DNA of 64,000 nucleotides, taken from the NCBI GenBank assembly GCA_965285935.1, contig OZ260662.1, positions 100,812,001 to 100,876,000 on the forward strand, read 5' to 3'. The position numbers and the translations under genes were made by a program. Below the pieces are notes generated by a model. It saw only the letters and a program-made list of their open reading frames with translations. It had not been told where the DNA came from and made no database searches. Source of the stretch: Ophelia neglecta. Its lineage: Eukaryota. Below, piece by piece: positions 7,696 to 57,142 of this stretch (position 1 is the stretch's first letter; each line of letters opens with the position of its first letter).

Positions 7696-10600
7696 CTGAA
7701 AAAGTAAGAGAATTCTATAAAACAGAATACTATATCTAATGCCGTTTTAATTGCTGCAATGGTTAATAAACCTATATGTGGATATACTGTAATCAGTAGC
7801 TATTCGCGAAATGACATAAGATTCCTAAATCAATGAAGACAATCAATTGGATTCTAGTTTGACAGTATTTCAAACACATTATGTCTCCGGGTTTTCTATT
7901 GAAAATGCGGTTTCTGCTGTGTAAGGGTAGAAGGCTTAATTATTAAAGCTAAGCCAGCCTTTGCGGTTTTAAATTCTATGGTAATAATAGCCGTATGTGC
8001 GTCGATTTAACTATATGATACCGTAATAAACCGTAGTGCTCACGGTAGTATGAACTCTACATGTGGCATGTCATAGAAAATAAAACACAGAGTCCGCAGC
8101 CTGTAAACTTGTAAATACTCAAAAGTTCATTTAGCCATATTTAGACTAATGAATGTAAACGTTCAGTCAGAGAAGCCACTCATAGCATCATCATTGCCTT
8201 CTCTGAATGATTTTACATCTTTTATCGGGGCTGTATATATCTGGCTCTTTAACTATTTCATGTGTACTATTGATTAGCCCCTGCTGTGAGGTCAAATGGC
8301 TTAGTGACGATATGTACTGAAGAGGACTCGTTTTTTTTGTCATTTGGATTCCCCTTTTCTTTGTCGATCTGACATATTTGAGTAGAACTAGATCCCATAC
8401 TCGATGTGAAATCATTAAATCAATGGTGTAACCCTGACTAAAACCTAATAAAATATAGAATTTCTTTGTAAGCCCATAGAAAACCTATAGAAAACCGCAT
8501 GATGCTTATTTCATCGAGTGTTCAATTTGACGTTGCTGTGCTTCGTCAAGATAAAACCAATAAAATTATTTCTGGCTATTTCGGCAGCTAGAACCTAGAA
8601 CTTAATCGAGTGTTGGACCGAAAACACATCTTATCAAATATTATGTTGGAGAGTTGATTAAACCATTTGCTTAAGTAAGACTAACCAGCTGTTGGCAAAG
8701 CAGGCAAATATAGCTTGAATCAAATATGTTAGCCTTTGAGGCCAATTTGGTTGCACTTACTCATCTGTAGCTAGTTGTTACCTACCCCAAGAGGATTCTT
8801 GCATGGCTCTCTAGATGAGGTATAATTGTTGTTATAACTAAACCTTCAAGGCTAACAAGCTAAGGCTCGTAGCATAATTTTATCTTCTTTTCTACTTGTG
8901 CATTTCGTAGCGGATGACTTTGAGAATAAATGTAGTTGGATTCTGGATTCGCAAAAATACTTGCTTGGTTCCATTGTACATACTTGCACAAGTTTTCCAC
9001 ACCAATCTTTTCTTGAATGTGTGGGACCACCTTTTTACTATACCGATATTACAGACATGGTTAAACTTATTGAAAGTTGGTTAGTTCCAATTAAAATCAC
9101 AAGCCAAAGAAATTATTTTCAATCCTAAACAAAAAAATCCTGACATGAAAGAAATGTAAAGTTTTAGTATGTGGTAAAATTAAAGCCTTAGATTGATGTG
9201 TGCCACAAACAAGGCATTTAGAAATGCAAACTTGAGATTTATTGAAAAGGGAATAGAGTACATGTGTCTGACAGGCCACTAACATAGTAAAACATTAAAG
9301 TTAAACTTTTCTTCTTCTCTTAGCCACTTGAAATGTCTAGAAATGCAAAGAAAGTAACCTTATCTTAGCCCCCCACCCCCCAAGACCACCACTTTTTATG
9401 TTGCAGCCAATTGCGCAAGAATTGGCAATACCCTTGAGAGAGACAAGGAGAGAAAGAGGCAATGCGGATTATATGTTTCATATAAAGTTTCAAAATAAAT
9501 GATTCAAACTAGTTATTCTACCAGGTCCATGCAAGGATAATGAGAAATAAAACAAGATGTACGAAAATAATAACTCACAGACGACGCGTTAAGTCCTAGA
9601 AATATTCCCGTGTCAATAGTCAATCGCGATGGATTAGGAAAAGGCAACCTGTTGGTATCAAATCTGCTGCCAAGTATGAGGTTTTCCAAGATGGAAATCT
9701 CTGTAGGCGTTGACGCTGTCGGCAGATGACCTCCTACAGATTGACATCGTTCTTCTGCCTCCTCCCAAGATAATTTTACTGTCTCCCATATAACATAATG
9801 GGTCACTGTGTTTTCGTCACAACATGGCTCGTCAACAATTCGATAATAATGGTCGACTATATCACGCAGAGGAACAAGAGGATTGATTGTCATCGTGACG
9901 TTACAATTTTTCTCAAGGGTGCAAAGCCCCGTTTTGTGTTCATTGAATGGACTCACGGCCAAAAACCTTACAGAAAATATATAATAAAATCTGAACATGC
10001 TGTTGAACGCGCTCATTTTGTGTAATGATATACCTTCTTCCCTTATGTGTGCAATTCGTATAATACTCCTCTTCACTTCATCGTACTCAAATATTACGTG
10101 TTGCGCAGCAAAACGAAGGCACGTTTTATTGCAAGTGCCATATTCTTTGAATTCTACCTCCGTCACATTTCTGTACATTGTAGCATAACCTTTTAAATTA
10201 TTCCCTTGGAGTCCACCTGCGAGTTTATCTCTAAACTGATAATGAGATACTATAAAAGCAACGCCAAAGTCACTTAAATTGATAGGAATTTCTAGGTTCG
10301 TATATTGGAAAACTGCATTAATCATTAAATTCTTTATTAGATTTATGTCACTCATTAGTGTAACCAATGGTTTACCCGTGGAAAGAGGAAAACGAAACTC
10401 CTTTGTTCTATTTCTTTTTGCTAGCAGTGTGTATGTCTGGCAACCCGCATGAACAGAGTAATTGGTGTTGTGACTTATTTGGTCCAGGGCCCTCCTCTGT
10501 TGAGGCTTACATTCCGCTGTCATTTGTGTTCTTTGTTCTATGTAGACATCGACGACCTCTGATAGGTACTCCAAGGGACTGATACCAAGGCTACAGTCCT

Positions 10601-12305
10601 GTGTCGTCTGCCACTCTGTAAAGGTCGGAATGTACTGTAGCACCTGGCAACTTATATCATGGACGTTTCTCGCCAAATTGGTCAAGGATCCATCCAACAT
10701 TGTCATACAATTGGAACCAAGCGAATATTTAAGATACCACCTGTCATTTTCACTTTTATTACAATACCAGTTGTCAACCGGGTTTGGGGTGAGCGGGATT
10801 TGATCTCTGATATAAGCGATCTCTAGTAATACCGGAGATTTATAACCTTTAATAGGCTTGCAGTAGGCGAACTTTCCTTGGCATTGGCTGTCCTGTGCTT
10901 TGATGGTGATGTTCAGAAAGCTTCCAGGAAGTGGGAAAAAATAAAAGAATACAACAATGGCGTGGGTGTTGCTGCGATATCGTGTCATCATAGGTTGTTT
11001 TGTGTCACCTTCCCAAGTCCAAACCGACTTACAGAAGACAGTCACGGGAGAATAAGCTTGGAATAGCTTATTAGGCATGTTGTTCATCACGTCCAGCAGG
11101 CCTTGGCGCTTTAATTCAAAAATGGCAACTCCACGATAGCGACAATCATCCGTATTCGGTCCCGCTACCCCGAATTGAATAATCTCCAAGTCCAGGAAAC
11201 TGTTTTGGTCAGCGAGAAATAATTTGGAGCCGATGCAACAAGCACCAGGGCAGTTGAGAATACTGCTGTACTGCAAACCACTAGCGCCTATATCTAAACA
11301 AGACGGTTTAATTAACGTATTAAAGTGTACCATTGCCAACTGAAATGTTGCCATTAGATCAATTGTAAACCGTGAGTCATGACAGTTGGCCGCAGAATAA
11401 TATCTGACGTCCATTGATATTATAAACGCTGTTGATTTTCTGAACAGCACTTTCCTATGCGACCTTGTTGTAATCTCCAGGCTCTCTGTAACAAACAATG
11501 GTCCATCCAATACATGTGCCTGAAAACAAGCGAGGCTTCCACTAAGGCCTAAAAATATTTGTTTACTGTAGTCCGTTAAAATGGTAATCATGAACTCGGT
11601 CCCATAAACGTAGTCGTTGGGGAAAATATTAAAGAACTGCATTGCCATAATATTATCTATACGTTGATAGTTGTTTTTGAAGTGGGGCGTTCCGTAAAAT
11701 ATGTCTGTAACGACAGGGAACGGACCAACAACGATTTGATAAACAAGAGTAAAGCCATCATCGATACTGGTGTTATTACCCAAAGTTATTTCAACAGGTG
11801 AATTGAAGTTGCTGTACCGTACAGTAAGTATATTTGCCTCGATGAAAATGCTGTGAGACACGAGATGTCCGCAATACACGCGTTTAATTTCCTCGCCAGA
11901 TTGCCACCTTCCGTTTAGTGTGAGTCTCTCAAGTTGACATCTATGGACAGAATCCTCAAGTAAGAAATGTACGAATGTCAGATTTATGTTAAACGTAGAA
12001 TGGACTCTAATCTTCCAGGTTCTGGAAAAACCTGGTTGTAATTTATCGGAACGCAATACGCCACAAGGTGAGAAACGGTTTACCTTGACAGGGCCCGTCC
12101 CACCTGCCTTTAGGAAACAATGAGATACCGTGGCCCAAAGCCTGGACGTCACAGCAGCACGCGTTTCTCGAACATTTTCCAGTGCTTTCGAAGAACAATA
12201 TGCCAGGCTGGTTATAAAGCCTTCTGCCGCATTACTTAAGGTACTACATGGAAGGGTAATCATAAATATAATTAAAAACATACAAGATAAGCTTATCCTC
12301 GCCAT
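4357..12305 (-). CDS. GRL101-like LDLa/LRR class A GPCR with CUB-like and C-type lectin ectodomain; two exons, complement(join(4357..7695,9579..12305)), ~2021 aa
   Basis: The 930-aa ORF begins with a signal peptide and ends in a half C-type lectin (SWEEAEERCQSVGGHLPT...IFLGL). A GTGAGT donor at 9578 joins in phase 0 to a tttttcAG acceptor at 7696. The added 38 codons (ERWNNG...DDDCV) run in frame into the 1074-aa ORF and complete the lectin (W..ISC...ICQ). About 6 LDLa modules, LRRs and 7TM with NPILY follow. Confidence 0.9.
9579..12305 (-). CDS. GPCR exon 1 (909 aa): signal peptide, CUB-like domain(s), first half of C-type lectin
   Basis: MARISLSCMFLIIFMITLPCS signal peptide. CUB-like PCGVL...WKIRV..FNINLTF..F.LE....C...YCG...GF.L.Y. 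Donor GTGAGT at 9578-9573. Confidence 0.85.
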
Positions 12306-37944: not shown

Positions 37945-40900
37945 TCATGCATCATCCTCCAAACAAAATAGACTGCCCTGACTACCTGTAGGGAGGAAAA
38001 CAATACTCACAATATAGGTATACGTGGCTGATTGTTATTATAGCGCTCGGTTTGTTTCAAAATTACAGAGTACAGAGACAAACGTACTCAATGCTCTTAT
38101 TGGGTAGTGGTTGACTGTATATTATGATCATGGTCATACGCTCTAAGTACAGAAAAACCTGCCTTATATACCACCGCAGACCACATGTTAATTCAGTAAA
38201 CCAATATGAGTAAATTATTGCTTAATTTAAATGTCAAAATAATCTGTCTGAACAGACCATCTGCATGACCAGACTAGTAATTTTTTAGTCCTCTGGGTGG
38301 TCTTAATGCACAAGTTTTATTGTAACACCAATATTCAGTTACCAATCTGATCAGATTGAAACAAAGCTATACCAACTTGATGATTAAATATGAAAGTCGA
38401 GGTTCATATATATACCGTGTATTTGTCGAGCTCTTGCGCACAACCTCGAGTAGCCTCCAGTGCCAACCAGGTTCTGGAAGGCTTGGTTCCACCAGTCTAT
38501 CATCGAACTGCCATATCGGGCCATCACGGCAGAGCCTGAAGTACTCAATTAACAGCAATCGAGTTTAATGACACGTTTATGGGTATGTCGTTTTTGCTAT
38601 ATATGATAGCAAATTGAACTACTGGATAGTATGATACTGCACTAAGGTCTTGTTTCTTGAAATAAGTCAGTTATATATTCATTAGTCCTGATTCCTAAAT
38701 AAGTACTTCTCCCTAGTCAAGCACTTTCGAAGGATAAATGACGCCACCTTGATTTGCTCATTATGTTTGTTGATTATACCATAAGAGAAGGCGGGCTCTG
38801 CTTTCTGCCTAACGTGAGTAGTACACGAGAATCTAGGTTCTATTGCCTCCATCCCCATTTGGTGTCTTTCAGCTGAGTTGAAGACATCAACCGTGAGTAA
38901 AGCATCAACCCATAAAGGTAAAATTTAGGTTATCCATAACGCATAAGCATGTACTTTTAGCAATATTAACCAAATCGTAGTGCGGGTTTTTAATAGCTCT
39001 ATGAACGTATATTACAAAACATAGGTTATAAAACTCTCTTCGCCCTAACCTTGGCGCAAATATATAGAGTCCGCCCCACCCCCACCCCCACCCCTTCCGA
39101 ATCTCACCTGCCCAGTCCTGAGTCCAATTATGAGTTTTCGGTGTGTCTTGGAGATGTGTGGGATATAGTCTCCGGGCTGGTTACCAGTAAAAACACTCTG
39201 TCAGGGCAGACATTGCTTACCTAACGCCCAACCGTCGATAAAACCTAACAAACAACCATTCAAACATGTAACTTGAGCTTGTAACATTCAAGATGAATTA
39301 TTTTGATGTTGCATGAGAAATACTGACATGAGATCAAATATATTGACATGAAATGCTACAGAATATGATATGGCTCATTCTTGCTTCAGAAAACCAAAGT
39401 AATAAAGAATTTTTGTCTCATTTCTAATAGGTGGGAAGTAGTACAAATGGGAAATAATAAAAAGTTCAATTCTGCATTGCACGTGAATAAACTTTGTATC
39501 TCTTAATATTGATAAGGGTAAAAGATAAATCAACATACAATTATGTTAACTGTCACATTAACTGAACAATAGCGGTGAAGCTAGAATTTGTCTAACCTAA
39601 TTTCCGGCCAGTAAGATTGTAGGGCCTTACTGGTATTTCTCCCGCTCGATAGTGCAAAGCCACTTGAAAGTTTGGGCTGAATCCCAAAGTGAAGTTAAAG
39701 CTATTCAGTCTCTCTGGGCTTGGAAAGAGTCCTACACATCCGTCATACCAGCGATCCAACAAACCTAAGAAGGTACATGTTGTCGGAAATTAACAATTTT
39801 GAGGCATTCGGTGCAAAAATGGACAGCAGTACATTGATAACGGTAGAGAATACATTCAGAGCGAAGCGTGGATCCATATGTTAAGTATGTAGCGTTTTGA
39901 CCATTTAAACCACTTTGTTTTACTGCTTTATAATGAGATATGACAAGACTTTCATCTTCTGATTTAGCAGGCCTTTATGTTAATGTCATTGTCGTATATA
40001 GCTAACATGCATGTTAATATATATATGTGGCAAATAGAACAGAATTCAATGGATACCCTGGAATTTGTTTAGGATATATTTCCAGTGTGCCCCATGATTA
40101 ACTGCCATTATCGCGTTCGTAACATTGTGTTCAAAACTACTTACATTTCGTTTTAAAATTCAACCAACGGAAAAGGGTAGGGTAAGTATCATAGCCAGGT
40201 TTAATACCACAGTGTTAGTCTCTTTGAGCTTCGGGATAAGGAAAGAGATAGCTTGCGATAACTTATTCCTACGGGGGCAACTTATTTCTTTGTTTCATAG
40301 TTGGCAATGACTCCCAGCGTGGAATGAGTATGAAAGCCTCTCAATACAAGTTATATATTTTTGTTATTCGACTTTGGGTTTGACATTTTTGACACTATAT
40401 TTGGTTGTATACTTGTTTTTCTTAATGAAGTTGCGATTGTTGTTTTTTTGAGAGTGCGGTCGCACGTTTTCCGTGAATTCCGACTGACTAAATGGGTTAT
40501 TCTTAACCACCGAAGCTGCCTTGTCTTCAATGTGTTTTTCCTATTTGTTTTCAAACGTTTTGTGAAATGCTTACCTACACCAGGCAAATCCATATCCCCG
40601 GATGTGCTCCAGTAGTGTTGAAACGTGTCTAAGAGGTAGTGACATCTACCTGCCTGATGACATACTGTAAAATAACAGCGTGTATACATGCTTATAGGAA
40701 CCACTAAGGTATTGTATGAAGAATCAGACCATCTCTGGGCAATGAAACTGAATAAATCAAGCCCCCATGCCTCTGTCTGTGTCACAGTGAGCCTCGAGTT
40801 TGACTGTTACACAAAACGGGAGTGGATACCTGGACAAAACCAACTTATTAGTCAAGAATAATTCAATTATATCCAATATGAAAAGGCACGGCCTAGAGCT

Positions 40901-42479
40901 TTACAACCTCTTGAAACTATATCGCCGATCAAATGGCCCAAAAATACTAATATTGACATGTTAAGTAATGAATCCATAAAAACTCTATTCTCCTTGAATT
41001 GTGAAATATATCCTCCCGCAAACCATATAACGGCCCCCTATTTTCATCAATTGGCCACTGTAAAAATTGTTCGACTCTTGTTTGTCTTGTTTTTCCGCCG
41101 ATTTCAGATATGAAGCTTCAATGTCAACTTACCAGCCAGTACGACAGAAATCGCCGTGAAAATGGTTTTAATTGTCGAATACAGAGATAAAAAATGTTTG
41201 TCGATACCGCCAATGTGTAGTGGTCAGGCTAATACTCTTTGTCTTGTGAATGTAAAACTAATTGGTGTTCTCGTAGTCAGAGGTAATGAAGGTCCTGGCG
41301 CAGTTATCTCTATCTTGATCAAGGTCTGTGATACAATGAGGCCAAGTGTCGAGTATACAAAGACCTTGTTTATATCAGACATGGGTGGGCCTAGTAGACG
41401 TCCAGCACGGTTACTTCAGCGGTTACTTCAGTGTTGGTTTACACTTGGAAGGAAAACCGATCGGTGCTTATCTGCTCGCTTAAGGAAACAAATGATGTGT
41501 ATTCTAAAAAAAAAATTAGTTATTATAAAATGGGGTAACTTGGTCGATTTAAGTGGGAAGTCCATCATGCTTTCATGATAGAGGGGTGACAATATGGAAA
41601 ATGGTAGTTATTTTGCCTTCAACAATTAGACAGAAAACATAAATAACATTATTGGGAATACTTTTTTAAAATTATTTTGTTAGCCTAAAGATCATTTCAC
41701 ATGGAATCATGACTCCAAACTTGGCATTTAATACCTCTTTTTCAGAATAAAAATATATTAAAATAATTTTCTTCGGTTGAATGATGTTCATAATTACACG
41801 AGAAGAGGTAAGAAATAAACAACTCGGAAATAACAACGGGTTACCAGGACATTTTGTTGAAAACTGACTTGATATTAATCAAGGAATAGCCAAATGCCCA
41901 TAAAATATATGTTTCGCGGCTCATTTATTTCATCTTTACAGTGGAACCCCTGGTGAAAGACCACCCAAAAATGGCCAAAAAACCACTCTTTTTGCTAAAC
42001 GAGTTGCCCTACCTGCCATGTATTTCAACCCCTGATGAGGGAGCTTCGGGATACGGAAAGAGATAGCTTGCGATAACTTATTCCTACGTGGGCAACTTAC
42101 TTCTTTGTTTCATAGTTGGCAATGACTCCCAGCGTGGAATGAGTATGAATGCCTCACAATACAAGTTATATATTTTTGTTATTCGACTTTGGGTTTGACA
42201 TTTTTGACACTATATTTGGTTGTATACTTGTTTTTCTTAATGAAGTTGCGATTGTTGTTCTTTTGAGAGTGCGGTCGCACGTTTTCCGTGAATTCCGACT
42301 GACTAAATGGGTTATTCTTAACCACCGAAGCTGCCTTGTCTTCAATGTGTTTTTCCTATTTGTTTTCATACGTTTTGTGAAATGCTTACCTACACCAGGC
42401 AAATCCATATCCCCGGGTGTGCTCCAGTAGTGTTGAAACGTGTCTAAGAGGTAGTGACATCTACCTGCCTGATGACATA
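37945..42479 (-). pseudogene. Pseudogene (paralog C) of the secreted solute-binding-protein family, exons 4-9 only
   Basis: Exons at 40575-40664 (duplicated at 42390-42479), 39597-39764, 39108-39244, 38813-38909, 38416-38535 and 37945-37985. Their sizes (90, 168, 137, 97, 120, 41) match the intact paralogs except a one-codon deletion in exon 4. Lesions: in-frame TGA at 39203-39201, exon-7 acceptor TGG and donor TT, a conserved Cys changed to Tyr. Exons 1-3 were not found. Confidence 0.9.
38150..38322. mobile_element. CAGTG-family MITE, degenerate
   Basis: ta-cagaaaaacctgcctta...ggtggtcttaatgcacaagttttattg-ta; lies in the last intron of pseudogene C. Confidence 0.6.
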
Positions 42480-43856
42480 CTGTAAAATAACAGCGTGTAT
42501 ACATGCTTATAGGAACCACTAAGGTATTGTATGAAGAATCAGACCATCTCTGGGCAATGAAACTGAATAAATCAAGCCCCCATGCCTCTGTCTGTATCAC
42601 AGTGAGCCTCGAGTTTGACTGTTACATAAAACGGGAGTGGATACCTGGACAAAACCAACTTATTAGTCAAGAATATTTCATTTTATCCAATATGAAAAGG
42701 CACGGCCTAGAGCTTTACAACCTCTTGAAACTATATCGCCGATCAAATGGCCCAAAAATACTAATATTGACATGTTAAGTAATAAATCCATAAAAACTCT
42801 ATTCTCCTTGAATTGTGAAATATATCCTCCCGCAAACCATATAACGGCCTCCTATTTTCATCAATTGGCCACTGTAAAAATTGTTCGACTCTTGTTTGTC
42901 TTGTTTTTCTGCCGATTTCAGATATGAAGCTTCAATGTCAACTTACCAGCCAGTACGACAGAAATCGCCGTGAAAATGGTTTTAATTGTCGAATACAGAG
43001 ATAAAAAATGTTTGTCGATACCGCCAATGTGTAGTGGTCAGGCTAATACTCTTTGTCTTGTGAATGTAAAGTAATTGGTGTTCTCGTGGTCAGAGGTAAT
43101 GAAGGTCCTGGCGCAGTTATCTCTATCTTGATCAAGGTCTGTGATACAATGAGGCCAAGTGTCGATTATACAAAGACCTTGTTTATATCAGACATGGGTG
43201 GGCCTAGTAGACGTCCAGCACGGTTACTTCAGCGGTTACTTCAGTGTTGGTTTACACTTGGAAGGAAAACCGATCGGTGCTTATCTGCTGGCTTAAGGAA
43301 ACAAATGATGTGTATTCTAAAAAAAAACGATACTTATTATAAAATGGGGTAACTTGGTCGATTTAAGTGAGAAGTCCATCATGCTTTCATGATAGAGGGG
43401 TGACAATATGGAAAATGGTAGTTATTTTGCCTTCAACAATTAGACAAAAAACATAAATAACATTATTGGGAATACTTTTTTAGAATTATTTTGTTAGCCT
43501 AAAAATCATTTCACAGGGAATCATGACTCCAAACTTGGCATTTAATACCTCTTTTTCAGAATAAAAATATATTAAAATAATTTTCTTCGGTTGAATGATG
43601 TTCATAATTACACGAGAAGAGGGAAGAAATAAACAACTCGGAAATAGCAACCGGTTACCAGGACATTTTTTTGAAAACTGACTTGATATTAATCAAGGAA
43701 TAGCCAAATGCCCATAAAATATATGTTTCGCGGCTCATTTATTTCATCTTTACAGTGGAACCCCTGGTGAAAGACCACCCACAAATGGCCAAAAAACCAC
43801 TCTTCTTGCTAAACGAGTTGCCCTACCTGCCATGTATTTCAACCCCTGATGAGGGA
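40226..43856. repeat. Tandem duplication, 2 x ~1815 bp (40226-42042 / 42041-43856)
   Basis: Near-identical copies. Junction cctgatgaggGAgcttcggg with 2-nt microhomology. It duplicates exon 4 of pseudogene C. Confidence 0.95.
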
Positions 43857-43910
43857 CAATACCTCTTATCAGACCACTTATTTGGTGGTCTCTCATGAGG
43901 TGCTCCAATG
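43753..43910. mobile_element. CAGTG-ended MITE; truncated duplicate at 41939-42042
   Basis: ta-cagtggaacccct...aggtgctccaatg-ta with TA TSD. The breakpoint of the 1.8-kb duplication falls inside it. Confidence 0.7.
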
Positions 43911-44597
43911 TACTACATTTGACATTTAATTTAGTTATTGAAAAAACAGTCTGGCGATGCATCGTTTTTTCTGGAATTTATACAACTTTGACATCATTGA
44001 ATTGCCTCATGTCAGTTATAAAAACAATTCGAACGATGAACATTATTTTTATAAAATTGTTCCTAACATGGGCCTATAATATCTAAAAAGTCCTGGGTTA
44101 AGGACTCACGTGTGTTATGTCTCCGTGCATGCATGTTAGAAAATAATAAACAGGCATGTTTTAAAATATATTAATAAGTGATTTGAGTAAAAGAGTAATT
44201 ACAGATTTTATCTATGTGAAAAAAATTAATATTCCAGACAATGAGCTCACAACCCATGTAATAATCCGAATAGTTTAATGCAAAGTGGAGAATATGTAGA
44301 ATAATAACTATTTTCACAATAACAAATAAAGAAAACAGCCAGAACACAAAGAGATAGTATCAGATTTTTAGTTCCTAAGATGGGGGGGGGGGGGGATCCA
44401 ACTACTCTATAGTAAAATAGCAAAACTAAGACCTCTGAAGATATGGGTTTTAAAGAGGCTTATACAGGTTCGCTAGAATGATCTATGTTCAACATTTCCA
44501 AGTAAATACTACCCCTAAGGCCCCTGGGATTGTCTGGCTTATACCAGTCTGGTACACTGAAGGCGGACCACGGCGTGTGTAACACTGTTACCTGACA

Positions 44598-47500
44598 ATG
44601 AAGACCATTGTTTCCTCAATCGTAATGCTACTCGCTGGTAAGTATGTTAATCAAAAATTTTACTCTACCTAAATTTATTTGATCGATGCAGTTCCAATAA
44701 TGTTTAATTCATGAGTAATTTTGTTAATGCAGTGCCATGGGAAGAGATACAGATTTTAATGAATAAATTGGCATTGGCTTTACGATGCGGTAACTAATGG
44801 CTACTGTAGAGCGCTCTTAATCGGAGTTGACAAGTACATAATTCTCAGAGCCGCAGCATTATTAATATTGAAAATTGTTGTTTTTCCATGTCATCAACGA
44901 TCCTTTTTATTGTCTATGATACTTAAATTTAAGGTATTGTTTGATGAATCTACTTGTTTCAGCATCAGATGCACTTGGTCACAATATGAATGGCGCCAGG
45001 GGTCGCTACCAATATGCAAAGGAGCATCAAAGACGAGACGACGCTGATCAACAAATAGAAGAAAACGAGGAGAAACCCCCGGTTCAGAACAAACATAGAG
45101 CGCATAGCAACAGCGAACAAGGAAGGGTCTGGCATTTCCAGGTCGATCCCTACCACTCACCTTGGGAGTATATGCAAGTTATAAATATTTTCCTTTCCTA
45201 TACACACCTTGATGTTTAACTGTAATGGTTGTACCATTTTACTGCTCATCGTATTTTGTATAAAAGACAATAGTCTAATAATCGCGAGGGTTTTATTAAC
45301 TGCCTTTGTATATATGGCGCCTATATTAACCTTAAACTATGGCAAAGAACTAAATATACTTACATTACTTACTTAAAATCATAATGTTTCCAAGAGGTTT
45401 AGGTGGTAAAATTGGATCGATGGAATATTAAAAAGAGTACTTCACAAAAAGCTACGAAACGAGTTAAATTAATAACGAAATATAACATTTACTGCCACTG
45501 TACTGTAAGTGGTACTGTTAGTTTCGTATTATTATATTAATTGTCGTTGTTCCATTGTCGGGATATAAGGGTCTAAATGGACGTTTGTCTACGATAAGAG
45601 CAACATTTAACTTTAATGTTTTTAATAATGCTTCAAGAAGTATGTACATACACAATCATGATGACATAAACAGTCCTCAACAACTAAAGAGACTCCTATC
45701 ATTTGACCTGATATATTTATTTACTGAGTCATATGTGGCAGGCCAACGCGTACCTTGTAGTGGTGGTACGTGTACCGATACTGCGATGGTTTTCCCCTTT
45801 AGCTAGTATTAGACACATATGCATTATGTCTTGCATTATATTCTGTTTTAAATTTCCAGAGACGATGAGGGGTTTGTAAAAGGGATCACCATAGATCTCA
45901 TCCTAGAAGGTAAAATCTCCTCGGGTATCCAGTGCATCTAACTCTGATGCTAATTTCTGTAAAAAGAAAACAACATTAAAATATCAGTCCCTGATGACAC
46001 ACTCTGAACACTTATTAGATCATTGTCATACCATTTTATCACGACGTGCAATTAATTGTCGGCTTGCTAATAGGCTTTACCATTAAGTGTATGCTTAAGT
46101 ACACTACAAGAAGTAAACGTTTGTTATGACTAGGCTGTTTGTATGTTAATTTTGTGCCCTGCATTCGAATATTTTTCCTTTAACGTTTATTAAATATGAA
46201 AAGCTTTATAATGTAAACTCGTGTACTGTAAATACCATTTTTGTATTTTAATGGTGCGGTTATGGCCCAGTCACAATGTCGGCGATCTGTCGGGGATTAG
46301 TTTTGGCCGGGGGTCGTCGTAGAAAATAAAGAATCCTTGAACAATCCTAGCAATAATCCTAATAAAAGTCGAGCAGTCACATTGTCTGAGATTTTTTCAA
46401 GGATTTTGACCCGGTTTTGTCGAAAAATCGTGGGATTAGCCTCCGATCGCCCCCGACTGCATCGGAGGCGATCGGAGACGATATCTGCGAGCGTCTTTTC
46501 TTTTAATTTTTCCCCCACCACGGCGATTTACTACGATTCCACCGTACGATTCGTCGGAGACGATCACAGAAAGCGTCGGAGGGCGCCTCCGATTCAGTCG
46601 GAGGGCGCCGGAGACTACTCGCAGACATTTAATCTCAACCTGAATTTCCAATCCCACACAGAATCTTGCGACTAGTCTCAGATTATTCGGAGGACGCCTC
46701 CGATTAATCGGCATCGTAGGTCATCGGAGATTGTGTCTGGGATGCCCAAAATGGGTGAAAAATCGTGCGAGCAATCTTCAAATTTTAAGTTCAAAGTTGG
46801 GGACCGCGACGGGTGTTGCGATGCCTAAAAAATCTGCGACAAGCCGCAGGCGTCCGGAGAGCGCCTCCGACGGGTGAAAAATCGTGAGATCTGTCTCAAG
46901 ATTTTGTTAAAATTTCCCGGGTTTTACCCATCGCCGACGCATCGCAACTGATTTGTGACTGGCCCATTATGTAGAACAGCTTACATTGTTAATTTATTTT
47001 TTGATGTCAAAGTTCTAATTGTTTAGCATTCCAGTAGTCCTTACAGGAGTCCAATAAAGAATTTTTAATATATTTTTTCTTCGCACAGTCTGTCGCCAGG
47101 CCGGTAGGAAGTGTCACTTCATAGTGGATACTCACCTCCACTGCTGGGACACATCCGGTGACACACCTTACCCTGGTGTTGGTAAGATGCATTTTGTCAA
47201 CAGAGCTGGCGCATGTTCTTTCAGACATAATTAAAAATCATACCACAACATTCCACACGATTCAAAATGTTATACTTCTTATAATTTTCAAAACAAAAAG
47301 CCTGGAATAATTGCTTGAAAGAAATTTTAAATTTGCACTATGCATTTTTTTATTTTAGAATAACGAGTACCTTGCGCCACATTGGAACATGAGGAGCATA
47401 CTGATATTAGTGCTCTTGTACCATATCATTACTTCATTTTATTATAGCAAAAAATCTCAATGACAGGTAGTGGATCTCTAATTAAATATGCATCAATTTA

Positions 47501-49504
47501 ATACATATTAAATATTCAAATATTATATACCCAATGCAACACCCACCCGTTCCTCAGGAAAACGTCCAAGCAGAAGTCCATTTGTATTCGATGTTTAAAA
47601 AGAACTATTCATGTGATTAAACTTTTATTGCAACACAACAAACTGCTATCATATTCTTTGGTGCCACTGGGCATTAGTTAAACTAAATTTTTGTTCTGGT
47701 TATATAATGTTTGTGGAAACTGACGTCTACGGAATTATTCGTAGCGATTATGTTGGCAATAAAAATTCTGCACTGTAGGTTTATTTGACAGCTGGTATGA
47801 CGGATGTATAGGCATGTTTGGAGCCCCGGAAAGGCTAAACAGTTTTAATTTTACCGTGCCATTTACGCCTAATATAGAGATAGCTTTGCACTATCGCTTC
47901 GGAGAAATACCTATGATGCCCCACAATCTCACTGACAGGAAAATAGGTAGGGAAATAAAACCAATGTTCTGTATTATACGTTATCTGTGTGATTCTTTAG
48001 TTAATATATGAACTAGTTTATTTTTTAATGCTGCATAGATAGTTGAATATTCCTAAATTGAATATCCTAAGATTCCTTATTAAGCATTAGGTGCAACTCC
48101 GACTCGCATGATCAAAGGCTGTTGACTACTTCTCATTGCAAAATATCTCAATTATCATTTTTAATTTTTTCATTTGCATTAAAAATTCTTTTTTGTTTGG
48201 GAGCTGGCGAGTGATGTATTTGGGCCTGTGGCTACATGTTCCTGGTGTTTTCAGAACGATATATTGGAATATTTTTAATTAATACTTTTGCCATACTTTT
48301 TCCGATTAACGTCAAATAAAAAAAATGCAACAAAGACGATCTGTTACGATTTTGTATAACATGACAACATATGTCTACATTCGAATTGTATGGTCGTAAT
48401 TTTTCATCATATAACTTTATATTTGTATGCTCATATCACCCCCGCCCCCAAATGAGAAAATATGTCCCCTAAATTCTACCTGCGGTTCACTGAGAAGTTC
48501 TATTACACAGGTTTTATCAAGGGTTACGCGGGTGGTAAAGATTGTCTGGCCAGGCAGAGTGTGTTCACTGGCAACCAACCGGGATACTACACCCCAGTGA
48601 TGTACGAGACTCATAGACAACTGATAACGGGACTGAGAACCGGAGAGGTAGGTTCTTGAACAGTTGACCTAAACAGAATGACGCAAATATGCCATCAAAC
48701 AAACTGCAGGAGCGCAAATGTATACAAAGTTATTTCTGGAATTAACGTAAGTGTAGCCCGTCTGGCTCAAAGCATTTATCAAAATATATACATGTGCCTT
48801 AAATTTTCATCAACATCCCAAACTCTCTTTAAACAAAACCTAAAAGAGCACGTGTTGACTTCTTTTGACAGAGCGTTAATAACGTCCATGAACCATCTGA
48901 CAATGTCTTTTTCTTCTTTAGATTGATGCTATACCTTATTCTAACATTTTCGACCCTTCAAAACGACACCAGATGGGGATACAAGCCACCGAGCCTTGGT
49001 TTTCTTGTACTACTCAGGGTAGGCAAGAGCAAGCGTCAGTCGCGATTTCGCACACATTGAAATAAATCTTAAATGTGTGTGTCAGTATTCAGTTTCATAA
49101 TGGAAGTTTCAGTATGTAGTGTATATTCATTCTCTTAATACGTATCCGTGCTAAATGTATCCAATGAATTAACCCCCCCCCCCCCCCTTCCTCCTACAGG
49201 AGCCTCAGTGATGGCGCGTTACGGAAGTCCAATGGTAGACTGGTGGAACAAGGGCTTCCAGAATCTAGTGGACAGTGGGTCCTACTCTAGTTTGTGTACC
49301 CAGGCCAAAGCAGTACACGGTCAGTAAGGTTGTACTTACAAGAGTTAAACAGTGGCTTCAAAACCTTGTCGCTTTATATGTCTCAATCAAAATAAAGCAC
49401 AAAATTTGGATGACGATAGCATAATATTGGCTTTTCAATTATATACTTATCCAGGAGACCGTGTCAAGATATTTTGTTTGGAGGATGGGGAACTGCAATC
49501 GTAA
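44598..49504 (+). CDS. Secreted bacterial-type family-3 solute-binding protein-like (PBP2 fold), paralog A, 321 aa; join(44598..44637,44963..45173,45860..45909,47089..47181,47779..47946,48511..48647,48922..49018,49200..49319,49455..49504)
   Basis: Signal peptide MKTIVSSIVMLLAASDA. SBP3-like motifs: PWEYIDDEGFVKGITIDLILEVC, PERLNSFNFTVPF, LTDRKIGFIKG, YETHRQLITGLRTGEIDA, WNKGFQNLVDSGSY. Exon sizes and phases match paralog B. Intron 2 has a GC donor. AATAAA near 49753 and 49762. Confidence 0.88.
46263..46966. mobile_element. PIF/Harbinger-like non-autonomous element (704 bp) in intron 3 of paralog A
   Basis: TIRs tggcccagtcacaa / ttgtgactggccca flanked by TTA on both sides. The GC/CpG-rich interior has repeated tcggag/ctccga motifs. 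Confidence 0.8.
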
Positions 49505-51644
49505 AACAAGGTGGAAGTAAACCAGACTGCACTTACACAGCACAAAGTTATATGAACAAGTAAAGCTATACTATAACACGTATCTTCCTAATGTCTCATA
49601 TTAAATGAATGTAATTATATTTTATGTAGAATATGCTTTTATGTTCATGCAATGTCTGGCTCCAATTATGCAAAAAAAGGCCCAAATTAGAACATTTTCG
49701 ACTTATTGTGGGTTTATGACGTTCTTCTCTCATCAAGCAATCACTATGCTGGAATAAAATTAATAAATGGCATCATATTTGATTTCTAGATCTGTCGCGT
49801 TTTTCCTAAGATTTAGTGTATCGTGTTTACTTGATAGAACAAATGCTAGTTCTTCAGTGTGTAAATATCAAATTTCAATTTACTGGACTTATTTGCCCCA
49901 AAGAGGAAGCATGTAAACTGCTACACAGAAATGAAAGAAGAGCCCCTAAGCATAGGATGCGTGATTGTCTTGCAGTAAAGATATCTCCTTGTGTCCTTCC
50001 CCAACCAGCAAATAGGTATTTCTATGGTGAGTAAAAAACAGCCTTGAATTAAAAGTTGTCAATGGCTCCTGGCCCTTTTGTTACGAGATCAACTTGAAAC
50101 TTCATGTGCCTGAAAACTGTTTGAATTCTACTTGTCTAAGCGCTTTCGAAATGTCTGAATCTGCTATGGAAAAGCCAGGTTATCGATGCCAAATATACCA
50201 GACACAGTCAGTGTCTAATAGCAGGCCTTATGTTATATCAATGATAAACACTTGGAAAATACACAAAATGATATATATGCCACTTGATATATTATAAACA
50301 ATGATTCTTTTAATCTACTCGATAGCTGGATTTTTTATTGATTTTTTATTGATTTTGTGTCAGGCAAAGGAAATTTCTCTGAAATTCGAATCTATCGAAA
50401 AATAAAAAATTCAAAGACAGGTCACCTCGTTTCAGTATCATAATTAATCATATTCAACAAAATAACTATTTTCTTTTCAGGCTAGAGCGCACCACCCCAT
50501 TTTAAGTTGGTTAAAATGAATAATTGCTAAGACCTCGCTCCTAAATGGTCTAAGGGGGTATATATCAAAGACAGTAGGATGGTAACAAGACAGTGCTTTG
50601 GCTTGTCACTTGATACTCCCATATTTAACATCTTACACTGCTCATTGTGACCTAGATGAATTACGGTAACAATTATGTAGCCAATCAATTGCCTTATCTC
50701 TAGTGACCCTCGGAATGGTTTAAACAGAACTTGGCGACCAGCCGTTTGAGACAGATAACCGACCTACATAAACGGTTAGTTCAACTGTTAAGTTCTGAGG
50801 AGCGACCAAAAGCCGAATTCGGAGGGGTCGCCTGAAAGGTAATACAATAAATCCAGCTGCTGCAAATAGTGATTCGTGTCACAAATATGCTGTATTCGGT
50901 TTATCTCACTTAGCCATATTTTCAGTCGGAAATCACCTTCCGATCTACCTTAGCGATGGAATATCATGTCGATAATATAATGGGTATTGATTCATTTTCC
51001 AACATTTGTCCTAATTACTTGATTTCTAACGGTAGTGTCAAAAACACATAAATTGAAATATCAACAACTGCAAATAAATTGCAGAGAAATGAACGTAAAA
51101 GAATCAGTTATAAACCGACATATGAGAGAAGTCCTCTTTGATGTCAATAATACCAGACATTAAGCGAGTCAGTATTCAATGCACAATGCGGACGAAAAAT
51201 GCCACCCAAGGAGTCCGAAAGCAATAAGTCAGAAGAGTGTTGCAGTAGTATAAACGAGTGTGGACGATTGTGTTTAAGGTCCTGCATTTCATTGATTGAA
51301 AGGGATTGGTTTTCTTTTCCTTTAATGGTCAGATTTTTTGAAAATGTATGTATATTTCGTATTTCTAATTTGTGTGACCACTAACATCCAGAACTTGGAG
51401 AACTATTTCAGTTATGCTAGTTATGGGTAAGTGATTCTTACTCGATATTAATCATGTGCCGGGCATGGATGTTCTCTAAAGGTTTTGCTCTACAACGGTC
51501 ACAGGGTCGCCCCTAACCAACTTCTAATCTTATCATTATATAATAAATTATCAAGATCCATGATTGATATTTTCCAAACGTTTGTCCGGCCTTTATCAAG
51601 ACAAATTCCATGGCTACTAGAATTACACGCTGGCACTCGCCTCA

Positions 51645-51652
51645 TATAAATA
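51645..51652 (+). promoter_or_regulatory. Putative TATA box of paralog B
   Basis: tataaata ~70 nt upstream of the GCCATG start. Confidence 0.45.
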
Positions 51653-51715
51653 CCTCTCAGACAGTTCCCACTCTCAGAAGGACTTGATTCACGGGTGCGA
51701 CAGCAAGACTTGGCC

Positions 51716-54700
51716 ATGACTACATTTTTAACGGCAATTGTAATATTCCTGGCTGGTGAGTTTAACACTTTGTATTATAGTGGTGAGGTTCTAACTGGGT
51801 AAGTTGTCATTACTGATATAACAAAACATTAAATTGGAATAACAAAATAAAAATAAATGACAAATGAATATTATGATATATATACATATAGATACATAGT
51901 CAATATATGCATGATTATAAAAAAGTGTACTAAGCTCTTTAAGTCATCGGAGAAAACTAGGCTAACTTCATGGAGCTCTTAATCACTAGAAACATACCAA
52001 GCCAAGTGTTCTTAATATGCCTCATTCTGCCTTACCATCACTCATCCGATGACGGGACAGCATCATAATGCTTCATTGTATGATTATGTAGTTTGCATTG
52101 TAACATAGTTTGTGTCCTGTGTTTCCAGCCTCAGCTGTGCATGCCGATCATTGGGCTCGCTTTGGCCATTCACGTACCCAAGAAACCCCTTTTCGTCATG
52201 GACATTCGGGAAATGGTCGATCTCACGCCGAACGCACAAATGGCCATCAGGAACACAGCCACTCTGAGCACAGTCATGAACACCACCCCCACTCAGATGA
52301 TGACCACGGTCTAACCAGAGTAATCCACGCCTACATCCACTCCCAAGGCGGCTACGACCATACTCATTCAGGGGGCCCAACCCCGCCAATAGGCGATCAT
52401 CACCATCATTACCATGGTCCAGTTCATGTTCACAACCATATGGATTCAGGGGAGTCTTCGGAGGAAGTTGAAATTGAAATAGATCCCGAGGCCAGCAAGA
52501 ACGAAGAAAAACAAGCATCTTCTGAGAATGATGAGAGAGTGTGGACTTTCCAGGTTGGCCATTTCCTCGCTCCATGGGAGTACATGTAAGGACTGTATAT
52601 ACATCATCATTCTTTGCCTTGAAAGTTTCCTTCTATTGTACATATACTTGTGCATTACGTTTAATATGTGTAGAACCAAAAGCAATAGTAAAATTGAAAT
52701 CAAAGAAAAATCGTGGTCGAAAATCTTTGCAAGAAGCTGAATACATCCCTAGTATAATGACGTCTTGCCGAAGAGCAGAGAAAAACGTTAAGGTGGTTTG
52801 ATTTATGCAGGCTCCTCGTCGCCGCCCTATTATACTATTAAATATGCATCTGTGTGTTTGCATCAGATTAACCTTTCTCGGTTTAAAAACTTATTTTTTT
52901 GACATTACAAACGGAAAATAGAATATTAGCAAGTCACAGTCCTTGACAGGCGTAAATATCACTGCATACATAAGTGTTTACACAATTTAGTACCTGCCGC
53001 AGGCGCCGAGTCACGCAAAAATATGAATTATACTTATGAATGCGGTGCAGTATTTTCGTTCGTAATTTATATGAATCAAATAAGTATTAAGCCAGCTCAA
53101 TCTAGCAAGTGTTAACCAAATAAATGGATTTGTCTTGAAGAGGAGTGCGATTAAAGCCCGGATTAATCTGTCTAGCATAAACATCCAACTTTCCTCTAGC
53201 CTGAACATATAAAAAGTCACAGTGTTTTTTAACTCCAATTACATTTAGAGAACACACATCGTTCTCCCACTTTAAATTACAATATTAGCCAGAATCCATC
53301 CTGAGAGGCAAGACACCTAATCTGAACTGGGCCGAAAGGCATCTGTGAGAACAATCCAACATTTAACATACGGTTCAAACTCATTGGAATACTTCATGAA
53401 CAACTGGACCTTCATTTTATCTTGTCAACTACATTTTTTTGTATTGTGCGTCATCAATACGATGCATGACCGCGGAATGACATTTTTAAAACTTCGACTC
53501 CACTGCCATTCATCGAAGACACATATTTAATACCTCAATATATTTTGTTTCCTTTCTCTATCAAAGAGATGATGAGGGGTACGTGAAAGGCTTCCATATA
53601 GATCTCCTGCAAGCTGGTAAGTGTTACTCCCTACATGCATGACGAGTATTTTATAAAAGTTTAAAGTAAACCAAACATTCTGATACAGGGCATCTTTGCA
53701 CAATAAGACTGCAAAACGAATAATTTCACTGGCTTCAATAATATTTGGGTCATTTAGATTCCCTTATTATTAAATATTTCCATTAAATTGGACATTAGAT
53801 GTCTTCTTACCTTTATGGAATTACTCGATACATTGTCAATATATACTGGAATACTACAAGAACTGCAACCTTTATTATTCCCTAGTTCCGTTGGTGTGAA
53901 TAATCTAACATCTAAATAGGTCTGATCAAATAAATATCACCTTATAACAATTCCAATGATAATAAGTAAAACGTTGACCTATTGCATGTCCCGCCAAAAC
54001 ACAACCCAACAAGGCAGACGTGAGAATGTGAAATTGGCCGTTTTATGTCTTAACGTAACCTTTTGATAAATGATTAACGAAATGTACTGATCGGTACGTA
54101 GGAACGTAGTGATTACCATCTAAAAGATGCTAAATTGTTTGTCGGCATTTCAACTGACACGCTGACTGAACCATTTTAACAATCAAGGAATCAATCAAAG
54201 TTACAAACCGGCATAGTGCTAAATGCAATAAGGCATAACTGAGCGTCCGTATCGAAGCCTTTAGGTCCGTTACACATGTACACCGGGTGAAACTGACCCA
54301 TATTTGGGCGATAACCTCTTCACGACCTTTACGCTGGGAGTAGGAATCAACGAGCAGCATTCACCATGACAGGCGATACAACACAATCCTGCTAGCTCAA
54401 TTTTGGCCAAACTTTTTGGGGATTTACTGTGCTTAATATTGTATATATTGTAAGTAAATTTAAGGTTTCAATTGTTTGTTTTTATTCTTTTTTTTTTGCA
54501 TACGATCAATGTGTTATATACGAGGGGAGGGGGGGGGGCAGATTTGCTTCACAACACCAAGGTCAAGGATTATTTTACTTTATTATGTTTCTCTCTGTGC
54601 TTGTGACGTTACCTACGTTAAGTTAAGCCGTTTTCGCAAGACGACGCCATAACAAGGACCTCATTCCTCAGCTTAGCATTGTATATATCAAATACGAGCC

Positions 54701-57142
54701 TCTCAGTGTTCTCTTTTTTAACATAAAAATGCCGTCAGCAGAAGTTCACTCTGAAAGTTTGCTTCATTTATTTTTCGTTTTGTAGTCTGCCACGAGGCCG
54801 GTAAGAGATGCCACTACATGCTGGATGATGTTCAACACTGCTGGGATACGTCCGAGGAGATGTCTCTCCCGGGTATTGGTAAGATATGTCAACAGCCTTT
54901 GGGAATTCAAATGTAGCGCGTGCTTCTACTTTTAATTATAAATAACAAAAAATGTCTATCTGAAAACAAAATTTACACTTAATGCAATACATTGCCTGTA
55001 CATTGCAATACATTGCCTGTAAATGTGGCAACCACAAATATGAACGTTCCTTGATATTGGTCCTTTTTGAAACTACCTCTTAAGCCTCCTCGTATTAAGG
55101 CTCCTGGTAATGCTATTACAATGACACTATGAGCTTATACTCCTTTGTATTTGTCGGATATTTCTAAATAATGATTCAGCTATGTTTTGACATTTAGCTC
55201 GCAAACTGAACGAAAGACTTGTCTTGTCAAAGTCCAATTGTGAGTTTCGGCTAGGTTATGTAGGAGTATCTTACATGTTCTAAACCACTCCACTGTAGGG
55301 TTATTGGACCGCTGGTACGACGGCTGTATCGGAATGTTTGCCAGTCCAGAGCGACTGAATAGTTTCAACTTTACAATCCCATTTACCCCAAATATGGAGG
55401 TTGGCCTTTACTATCGATCTGGAGAGGTACCAATGAATCCCCAAAATCTCACTGGCAAGAAAATAGGTAGGATATATATACTAATTTGCGTTGGTAACAC
55501 CGGTACTTTTCATTCCATATTACAAAAAAAGTAAATTTAAATATTCCCTTTTTAATTATTATATATCGTTTTACCATTACTAAGCACTAATTACGCTGTT
55601 TCCGCTGAGAAATCAAATCCTTTTATCAAATGTCAGAGGCAGCTCCACCTCGGTTATTTTGACTGAGTTCTAATAAAACGTAGCCTACCTATTCTTAGCT
55701 ATTGTGTTGTTATAATACAGGTATTATCAAATTACTGGCTGGCGAGGAATGTCTGTCCAGACAGGGCGGGTTTACAGGTAACAAGCAGGGAGAATACATT
55801 CCTGTCATATACGACACACCCACGCAACTCATCATGGGACTTCGAAAAGTAGAGGTAAGTTCTTATTAGAATATTCGTCGAGTGAGACCTGATTATTATG
55901 ATGATATTGCAGAATATAGCAGATATAGCGCGATGGCCGATCGGTCCAGACTATACGTCCAGGGTATCGCTTGCGGACAGAGGGTTTTATGCGTTTCCAT
56001 TGGCAAGGTCGTTAATAACAATTTGGCGAGTGGATACCTGGCGGACAAGTGAATAGTCGTCTTTGAAGCTAAATGCGGCTGTTCCTTGTTTGATATCTGT
56101 GGCGTTGAGATGGTTCAGGAACAAAATGTATAAACAGGTCTAGGTGATTTAGGGGTAATTTTTACGGTTTTGCGAGCAGACCTAGACTAGACTGGAGCAA
56201 GATGTACATTTACCTTCAAAAACGCCAAAATGGTAAAATCAAAATATGCAGTTGCAGCAATTTAAACGTTCTGAACCTGTTTCGAACAGATAGTCGTCTT
56301 CTTTCTTTGTCTCATACTGATATATTACCAAATATTAGGAGAGTTCACGTATTTATCATTGACGCTTCACTGCAAAGCTAATATCAAAATATTAATTCCA
56401 GATTGATGCTTTTCTTGCCCCAAATGCATTCGACGCGGCAACACAGCAACATATGGGGCTAGAAGCCGTCGAACCTTGGTTCTTCTGTACTACTCATGGT
56501 AAAGGACTTTACGCCTTTATATAATCTATCAATTTGGTAATTTATGTAATTCCCCAATCTTATATTAATGTTGCATGTTTCCATTTCTACCATTCCAGGA
56601 GGCTCAGTGATGACGCGTTACGGCAGTCCACTCATTGACTGGTGGAACGAGGCCTTCCAGAATCTGGTGGACACTGGAGAATACTCTAGACTGTGTTCCA
56701 GGGCCAGAAGAATACACGGTCAGTTAATGTCACACACTCTGTATATTCCTATAACTTGGTCTTCTACGTCAATAACTTTATATCATTATTTTTATTTAGG
56801 ATTAAATAAATTGTAGCGCAATTGGTTAGATTAATGGCTGGTGTTGGGTCCCTTCGGCGTAAAATAATTTAAATATCCAAATAAACGAGACGAAAATAAA
56901 AGCTCTCGCCACACCGCTTTTTGTCCCGAGTGCGAATTATAGACTAATTTCTCAAGAAAATAGTAAATATTTACATCTAATTAGATAACAAATGGGATAA
57001 AAGTATTTTAGACTTCCTTATAGTTATCTTACTAGAGGTATTGTATGTGTTATTTATGACACTTTTATTTTCTTAATCATCGGCGACTGACTTTCTTTCA
57101 GGTTCCCGAAGCAGAGTGTTTTGTTTGGGGGATGGCATATAG
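51716..57142 (+). CDS. Secreted solute-binding protein-like (PBP2 fold), paralog B with His-rich N-terminal extension, 399 aa; join(51716..51755,52129..52585,53567..53616,54786..54878,55299..55466,55721..55854,56402..56498,56599..56718,57102..57142)
   Basis: All introns are GT-AG and the frame is open throughout. Signal peptide MTTFLTAIVIFLAASAVHA, then a His-rich tract and an acidic linker. SBP3-like motifs follow: PWEYIDDEGYVKGFHIDLLQAVC, PERLNSFNFTIPF, LTGKKIG, YDTPTQLIMGLRKVEIDA, WNEAFQNLVDTGEY. AATAAA near 57293. Confidence 0.9.

Follow-up and report, generated by a model that had tools for sequence, protein, structure and literature searches.

Can a solute-binding protein of the bacterial periplasmic type exist in an animal as a complete, secreted protein in its own right? 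The question is raised by a 64,000-nucleotide stretch of the genome of the animal Ophelia neglecta (contig OZ260662.1, G000:C2:100812001-100876000 in our notation for this 762 Mb genome; called the window below), which contains two intact genes, A and B, together with an inverted pseudogene, copy C. On the usual view the type II binding fold of animals is confined to larger proteins, namely the ligand domains of ionotropic glutamate receptors (iGluR) and ionotropic receptors (IR) and transferrin, and transporter-linked solute-binding proteins are not known in animals. A preliminary description, made from the letters of the window, proposed that A and B encode secreted proteins resembling the family-3 binding proteins of bacterial ABC transporters. 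Here we report that the A/B family consists of a stand-alone type II binding domain of the bacterial family-3 kind and is not a fragment of an iGluR. A and B are probably secreted, disulfide-stabilised Venus-flytrap proteins of an old bilaterian family that bind small carboxylate ligands independently of a transporter.

Genes A and B encode complete secreted proteins

Stop-free segments from three regions of the window are mutually similar as proteins, those of B being 42-75% identical to those of A over seven segments and 47-69% identical to those of copy C. Exon borders were set by reading the DNA around each matching segment. Gene A (44598..49504, plus strand) has nine exons (44598-44637, 44963-45173, 45860-45909, 47089-47181, 47779-47946, 48511-48647, 48922-49018, 49200-49319, and 49455-49504), which give 966 nt encoding 321 residues and a terminal stop. 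Gene B (51716..57142, plus strand) is also intact, and its nine exons (51716-51755, 52129-52585, 53567-53616, 54786-54878, 55299-55466, 55721-55854, 56402-56498, 56599-56718, and 57102-57142) give 1200 nt encoding 399 residues, the terminal stop ending at 57142. The reading frames of both genes are open. Acceptors are AG throughout and donors are GT except for a single GC donor in intron 2 of gene A. Checked on the sequence, the splice sites, open frames and terminal stops agree with the two intact nine-exon genes of the preliminary description, whose outer coordinates likewise held (57142 for the end of the gene B stop, 37945-37947 for the stop of copy C). Note that the GC donor of gene A reads AT in the exon followed by GCAAGT in the intron, with the GC at 45174-45175, and that the acceptor of exon 8 in the same gene is closely preceded by a run of 15 C residues (49175-49190).

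Exon 1 of gene B (51716-51755, plus strand) carries the start codon and the hydrophobic core of a signal peptide and ends in a phase 1 donor. Exon 1 of gene A (44598-44637) has the same length and phase, and in each gene the ATG is followed by 13 hydrophobic residues and then by the donor. The N-termini of both proteins are signal-peptide-like (MKTIVSSIVMLLAASDA / MTTFLTAIVIFLAASAVHA). The sole strongly hydrophobic 19-residue window of each protein begins at residue 1, and apart from the signal peptide neither protein showed a membrane segment in windows of this size. Each protein has eight Cys residues, which fall in family-conserved columns, plus two N-glycosylation sequons. The domain is continuous and not split in A and B. 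The signal peptide, the lack of a transmembrane segment and the single uninterrupted domain that had been read from the letters are thus borne out.

The most conserved exon is exon 5 (55299-55466 in gene B, plus strand), which encodes the motif WYDGC.G...PERLNSFNFT with its invariant Arg; the counterpart in gene A lies at 47779-47946 on the same strand. Exon 2 of gene B (52129-52585, plus strand) encodes the end of the signal peptide, a low-complexity tail that is first His-rich and then acidic, and the domain's first strand (VWTFQV...PWEY). The complete gene B protein contains 35 His residues. Within the window this tail is found only in gene B. Comparable His-rich or acidic tails occur in the homologues P0007, P0016, P0017, P0028, and P0048 (see below), which makes such tails a recurrent feature of the family.

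The domain is that of bacterial family-3 binding proteins

Searches for A and B were made exon by exon, and the exons were concatenated solely for reading frame, composition, substitution rates, intron mapping, and tree placement. Because the exons are too short, the Pfam signal of single exons is weak: nine single exons gave one weak match, that of gene B exon 5 to PF00497 (12.2 bits, E 0.16, where the gathering cut-off is 26.4 bits). A six-frame search of the genome with PF00497 gave 36 matches, which lie at iGluR-type loci, and the locus in the window was not among them. When exon 5 alone was used as the query, 11 close paralogues were found (E 1e-20 to 1e-33). A profile made from exon 5 of these paralogues (A1) was run against 1.84 billion representative proteins and returned 48 proteins, including full-length proteins of 240-360 aa having a signal peptide, a variable tail, one domain, and conserved Cys residues. 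The A1 matches P0009, P0011, P0013, P0018, P0034, and P0037 were rejected as spurious, being long, multi-stretch bacterial Ig-like or repeat proteins.

Nine of the ten full-length homologues that were scanned passed the cut-off of PF00497 (SBP_bac_3) with scores of 33-54 bits (maximum 53.7). A second profile (A3) was constructed from 15 full-length homologues, and all of the domain exons of A and B map onto it in order. The exons of gene B fall at profile positions 25-72, 60-88, 88-120, 116-176, 183-222, 221-256, and 251-294, with per-exon scores that sum to ~228 bits; exon 5 scores 77 bits against the family profile. These in-order exon matches and the aligned motifs cannot be due to chance, and the motif alignment to family-3 binding proteins, which had been made by eye, is therefore real.

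Compared with the PDB, A3 matched the GlnPQ SBD1-SBD2 tandem with E 1e-31, AncQR with 5e-21, and HisJ, LAO, ArtJ, and others with 1e-17 to 1e-12; the best 60 PDB matches included no iGluR. The AlphaFold model of the homologue P0007 has block-mean confidence (pLDDT, predicted local distance difference test) of 88-98, mostly above 90, over residues 111-354, with a disordered tail. A Foldseek search with this model, a check that the preliminary description had suggested, returned the bacterial GlnPQ/LAO/GlnBP fold. GlnPQ SBD1, LAO, and GlnBP were the top matches (E ~1e-16, target-normalised template-modelling score ~0.8 and up to 0.83), and the top matches listed for P0007 were all bacterial family-3 binding proteins or their variants, with which the model shares 15-23% identity. 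In the ESM Atlas the nearest clusters were those of bacterial SBP_bac_3. The proposed likeness to the GlnBP/HisJ/ArtJ type was therefore well founded: in sequence profile and predicted fold the family resembles the bacterial proteins GlnPQ, LAO, HisJ, and ArtJ more than it does iGluR domains.

The exons could in principle belong to a larger iGluR- or IR-like receptor gene whose channel or membrane exons lie elsewhere, and a few homologues do give weak matches to Lig_chan-Glu_bd (PF10613), which reach at most 21.7 bits and stay below the cut-off of 30. We give this explanation almost no weight. In-frame stops follow the conserved C-terminal Cys motif in A, B, copy C, and all homologues, so that the gene models contain none of the downstream membrane or channel exons that the preliminary description had said would count against it. 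The ligand-gated channel domain PF00060 had no match in the scanned homologues, the domain is unsplit, and transcript-like contigs (described in the next section) hold the complete reading frame plus untranslated flanks. Moreover, the genome has an iGluR-type reading frame, L006, that scores above the cut-offs of both PF00497 and PF10613 yet aligns with A3 at an hhalign probability of only 3.7%.

L006 (G000:C12:14.01 Mb), L003 (G000:C12:28.93 Mb), and other loci on C12 are intron-free reading frames of ~200-300 aa that match PF00497. L003 and L006 also match Lig_chan-Glu_bd, L006 above the cut-off, and look like parts of iGluR/IR-type genes that are clustered on C12. These C12 reading frames are only remotely similar to the secreted family of A and B.

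Indirect support for expression, and the lack of an importer permease

Some family members are represented by short intron-free contigs, each with a complete reading frame of 280-360 aa and untranslated flanks (for example L021, 1760 nt), whereas family genes in the four genomes examined have seven to nine introns each. These transcript-like contigs are indirect support for expression of the family. In Ophelia neglecta itself, the splice sites, the open frames and the conserved introns suggest that A and B are spliced.

That animals have no ABC importers dependent on solute-binding proteins was stated in the preliminary description, and the genome agrees with it. A search of the whole 762 Mb genome for the binding-protein-dependent permease domain PF00528 (BPD_transp_1) gave no match with E <=0.01, although a gene split by introns can escape such a search. 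The same domain was found in 14 of 14 prokaryote genomes that served as controls.

An old bilaterian family with conserved introns

Homologues were found in the annelid Owenia fusiformis, the bivalve Pinctada imbricata, the priapulid Priapulus caudatus, the brachiopod Lingula anatina, the hemichordates Saccoglossus, Ptychodera, and Glandiceps, and in echinoderms (a crinoid, a brittle star, sea stars, and sea urchins), so that the marine-invertebrate look-alikes mentioned in the preliminary description do exist. Their database names are all automatic. Entries from Saccoglossus, Glandiceps, Asterias, and Amphiura are called 'L-arginine-binding protein-like', those from Ptychodera, Anneissia, and Lytechinus 'arginine-binding periplasmic protein-like', and those from Pinctada, Owenia, Strongylocentrotus, and Patiria 'Solute-binding protein family 3/N-terminal domain-containing protein'. 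These automatically named entries are true homologues of A and B, as judged from Cys pattern, length, architecture and, where checked, introns. The architecture of A and B (signal peptide, variable tail, domain, Cys pattern, and C-terminal Cys motif) equals that of P0007, P0022, P0050, and P0051. The literature searches found no paper or experiment on this animal family and no described function, as the preliminary description had supposed. One Pinctada imbricata entry, P0025 (KAK3102726.1, 418 aa), contains two partial copies of the domain in tandem and is either a fused model of adjacent paralogues or a genuine two-domain form.

The introns of three annotated genes were mapped exactly on their genomic loci and placed on profile coordinates. 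A and B have domain introns at 72.2, 89.1, 120.1, 176.1, 222.0, 253.1, and 293.1 (profile position followed by phase). All seven domain introns of the Owenia gene P0022 are common with A and B, the sixth lying beside 252 with equal phase. The Priapulus gene P0050 has six introns in common with A and B, with its seventh at 252.0, and the Saccoglossus gene P0051 has four. Since positions and phases are shared by an annelid, a priapulid, a hemichordate, and Ophelia, the spliced gene is older than the split of protostomes and deuterostomes.

This result decides the question of recent origin. We assign a very small probability to the idea that the genes came recently from bacteria into this lineage by horizontal transfer, or that bacterial sequence contaminates the assembly. 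It is true that the closest structures solved so far, like the closest ESM Atlas clusters, are all bacterial, but those structures are just 15-23% identical in sequence. Each of the two genes is interrupted by eight spliceosomal introns, of which seven in the domain are common with the annelid and four to six with the hemichordate and the priapulid, and the genes stand in chromosomal tandem arrays of a 762 Mb animal genome. No close prokaryotic relative of P0007 was found by a pattern scan of 185,579 prokaryote genomes, nor did the exon 5 profile find a bacterial protein of the A/B type among the 1.84 billion representatives. A recent or lineage-specific transfer and contamination are therefore ruled out. 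Horizontal acquisition, which had been offered as a possibility, is tenable only if the transfer predates bilaterians, the alternative being vertical descent; the shared introns remove the recent or lineage-specific form of that proposal.

In a tree of 43 animal sequences, which was midpoint-rooted and is descriptive, A and B group with unnamed transcript-like sequences inside a larger clade to which the Owenia genes also belong. Ambulacrarian sequences make up a clade of their own, and it is to this clade that Lingula and Priapulus are closer. Note that word-index homology searches returned only P0007 itself when P0007 was the query and 7 proteins with alignment A2, numbers that reflect the limit of the index rather than rarity of the family.

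Selection, conserved residues and the ligand pocket

Over 250 domain codons A and B share 61% identity, with synonymous divergence (dS) of 1.03, nonsynonymous divergence (dN) of 0.25, and a dN/dS ratio of 0.24. Both genes have been under purifying selection since their duplication.

The Arg of the PER.NSF motif (Arg138 in profile numbering) is invariant in all 43 sequences, those of A and B included, in protostomes and deuterostomes alike. It aligns with the carboxylate-binding Arg in the ...T.EER... loop of the GlnPQ substrate-binding domain and AncQR. Across the same 43 sequences seven Cys columns show little or no variation, and an aromatic residue, mostly Trp, occupies profile position 181 in 36 of them. 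Positions at which A and B differ (63-67, 134-135, 177-183, and 225-230) align with ligand-contact segments of the bacterial proteins.

In a mechanism consistent with these data the two lobes would close on a small carboxylate-bearing ligand, whose carboxylate would be held by the invariant Arg of PER.NSF, the ligand probably being bound otherwise than as a canonical alpha-amino acid. The variation of the pocket-lining segments among paralogues would give a range of specificities across the family, and the N-terminal tails, which vary and in B are His-rich and acidic, may add binding of metal or binding that depends on pH or matrix. Acting outside the cell and without a transporter, A and B may serve as carriers, scavengers or sensors, for example as perireceptor binders of dissolved small molecules.

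Several observations weigh against the view that A and B are ligand-binding proteins of this kind. The Asp that binds the alpha-ammonium group (in the VDAVVTD segment of AncQR) aligns with position 228, which is not conserved in the family (N in 17 sequences, S in 6, P in 4, and A in 4; S in gene A and P in gene B). We take the AncQR residue to be the equivalent of LAO D161 and GlnBP D157. In addition, an aromatic residue stands where the G-x-T loop would have Thr or Ser. With the alpha-ammonium Asp lost, a canonical amino-acid ligand is doubtful, and the likeness to the bacterial amino-acid binding site thus holds for the Arg and fails for the Asp. The fold was modelled on P0007, which shares roughly half its residues with gene B in exon 5, rather than on A or B. 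The three sequencing runs that cover the locus are of genomic DNA, and their contigs span exons and introns alike without splice joints. Finally, the His-rich and acidic tails, the many cysteines and the tandem expansion would suit matrix or biomaterial proteins equally well.

This last point leads to the most serious competitor of a binding function, in which the fold is a mere scaffold and the proteins are extracellular structural, matrix or metal-handling components of mucus, tube, shell, jaw or cuticle that act through their tails and a disulfide-rich surface. The recurrence of low-complexity tails in B, P0007, P0016, P0017, P0028, and P0048, the eight conserved Cys residues, the large tandem expansion and the loss of the alpha-ammonium Asp all fit such a role. 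However, all 43 sequences, from several phyla, keep the pocket Arg, and 36 of them keep the aromatic residue at 181, a pattern that is hard to explain without a ligand. Moreover, the tails are short in gene A and in many homologues, and clear purifying selection is seen on the domain and not on the tail. We therefore regard the scaffold explanation as unlikely, though deserving of attention.

Another, less likely reading is that the family is an enzyme derived from a binding protein. Cyclohexadienyl dehydratase is such an enzyme, derived from cationic amino-acid binding proteins, and it appears together with its reconstructed ancestors among the PDB matches of the family (E ~1e-12). The remodelled pocket, with its Asp lost and aromatics gained, would be compatible with a change of this sort, but genuine binding proteins match the family better than these enzymes do, catalytic residues were not recognised, and a pocket that varies among paralogues fits varied binding better than one conserved chemistry. 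An enzymatic function is thus improbable, and transporter-independent binding of small carboxylates is the explanation that we prefer.

Copy C and further copies in the genome

Copy C (37945..42483, minus strand) is a pseudogene in which exons 4-9 are recognised: exon 9 at ~37945-37987, exon 8 at 38411-38542, exon 7 at 38814-38909, exon 6 at ~39117-39266, exon 5 at 39595-39765, and exon 4 twice, at 40573-40668 and 42388-42483. Its terminal stop is at 37945-37947, and exons 4, 5, 6, and 8 match A3 in order. A premature stop interrupts exon 6 (39201-39203), one conserved Cys is lost from exon 4 (CW to YW), and exons 1-3 were not detected in copy C. Exon 4 is doubled by a tandem duplication (40226..43855) composed of two ~1.8 kb units that are 97-98% identical. 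With its premature stop, lost Cys, duplication and undetected first exons, copy C is the inverted pseudogene that had been proposed. The duplication also yields two near-identical reading frames of 144 aa on the minus strand (40351-40785 and 42166-42600).

A search of the genome with the A3 profile gave 29 or more exons corresponding to exon 5, so that the family has expanded to at least 29 copies here. These lie on C2 at 52.8, 90, 98.8-99.0, 100.85-100.87, 101.70-101.75, 105.4, and 114-117 Mb, and also on C7 (69-78.7 Mb) and C138. An inverted near-copy of the A/B/C trio is found ~0.85 Mb away (G000:C2:101704500-101747200; loci L010, L013, and L020). It consists of B' (minus strand, exon 5 98% identical to that of B), A' (minus strand), and a C-like fragment (plus strand). 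Either the segment was recently duplicated in inverted form or the assembly contains it twice. Another subfamily, more distantly related, is located at C7:69.0-78.7 Mb, at C2:52.84 and 114.1-116.9 Mb, and on C138. In this subfamily exons 7 and 8 are fused in one open frame (profile positions 221-294), as they are in the Saccoglossus gene.

Elsewhere in the window, the minus strand at 4357-12305 contains a receptor-type neighbour with reading frames of 1074 and 930 aa that have LDL-receptor class A, leucine-rich-repeat, and CUB domains.

Comparison with known systems and significance

The A/B family resembles the bacterial polar amino-acid solute-binding proteins (GlnPQ SBD1/SBD2, LAO, HisJ, ArtJ, GlnBP, and AncQR) in fold, in domain length, in its one uninterrupted chain, and in the carboxylate-binding Arg, which is in the same loop. 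Unlike these proteins, with which it shares 15-23% identity, it has eight introns, a eukaryotic signal peptide, eight conserved Cys residues, and variable low-complexity N-terminal tails. It has no operon and no permease found in the genome, and it retains neither the alpha-ammonium Asp nor the loop Thr/Ser. With the S1S2 ligand domain of iGluR and IR proteins the family has in common the type II superfamily, an extracellular setting in animals, and disulfides. However, in iGluR proteins the channel interrupts the ligand domain, which is attached to membrane segments, whereas the domain of A and B is continuous and soluble.

The nearest functional analogue that we found is IbpS, a secreted metal-binding protein of plant pathogens that binds Fe3+ and Cu2+ and works without a transporter (PMC6813330). 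IbpS-type copies have entered eukaryotes by several separate transfers and are patchily distributed in fungi, oomycetes, one springtail, and one nematode (PMC6813330). IbpS is thus a precedent for a secreted, transporter-free binding protein that is multigene in eukaryotes. By its description it is of a different binding-protein class, whereas the A/B family is monophyletic and has introns that are shared across bilaterians. A second parallel is SmGBP of Schistosoma mansoni, which is described as a truncated Venus-flytrap protein of the metabotropic-glutamate-receptor type (PMC3206071). Like A and B, SmGBP is an animal Venus-flytrap module that lacks the membrane part usually joined to it. Its relatives, however, are the metabotropic (class C) receptors, and it is a truncated receptor, whereas A and B are family-3 proteins of an old, independent family.

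Members of the family are already in public databases under automatic names, though we found no characterisation of them, and they show the family-3 fold in use as a free secreted animal protein. The protein is complete, secreted and disulfide-braced, it has kept its exon structure in lineages as far apart as annelids and hemichordates, and it is multi-copy in many marine phyla. Should the A/B proteins bind ligands, animals would have a new class of soluble binding proteins, with consequences for chemosensation in marine invertebrates and for the ways in which these animals take up or withhold dissolved organic matter and handle metals. The family would also be a useful outgroup for the origin of the iGluR ligand domain.

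A wider proposal, which we put forward tentatively and at less than even odds, is that a soluble, transporter-independent family-3 repertoire was part of the bilaterian inheritance, was retained and enlarged in most phyla of marine invertebrates, and captures or senses small carboxylate metabolites dissolved in body fluid, mucus or sea water. Such a repertoire would have begun as a free-standing relative of the iGluR-domain module or as a bacterial acquisition before the bilaterians. If this proposal is true, animals own an unstudied class of extracellular small-molecule binders, whichever its origin.

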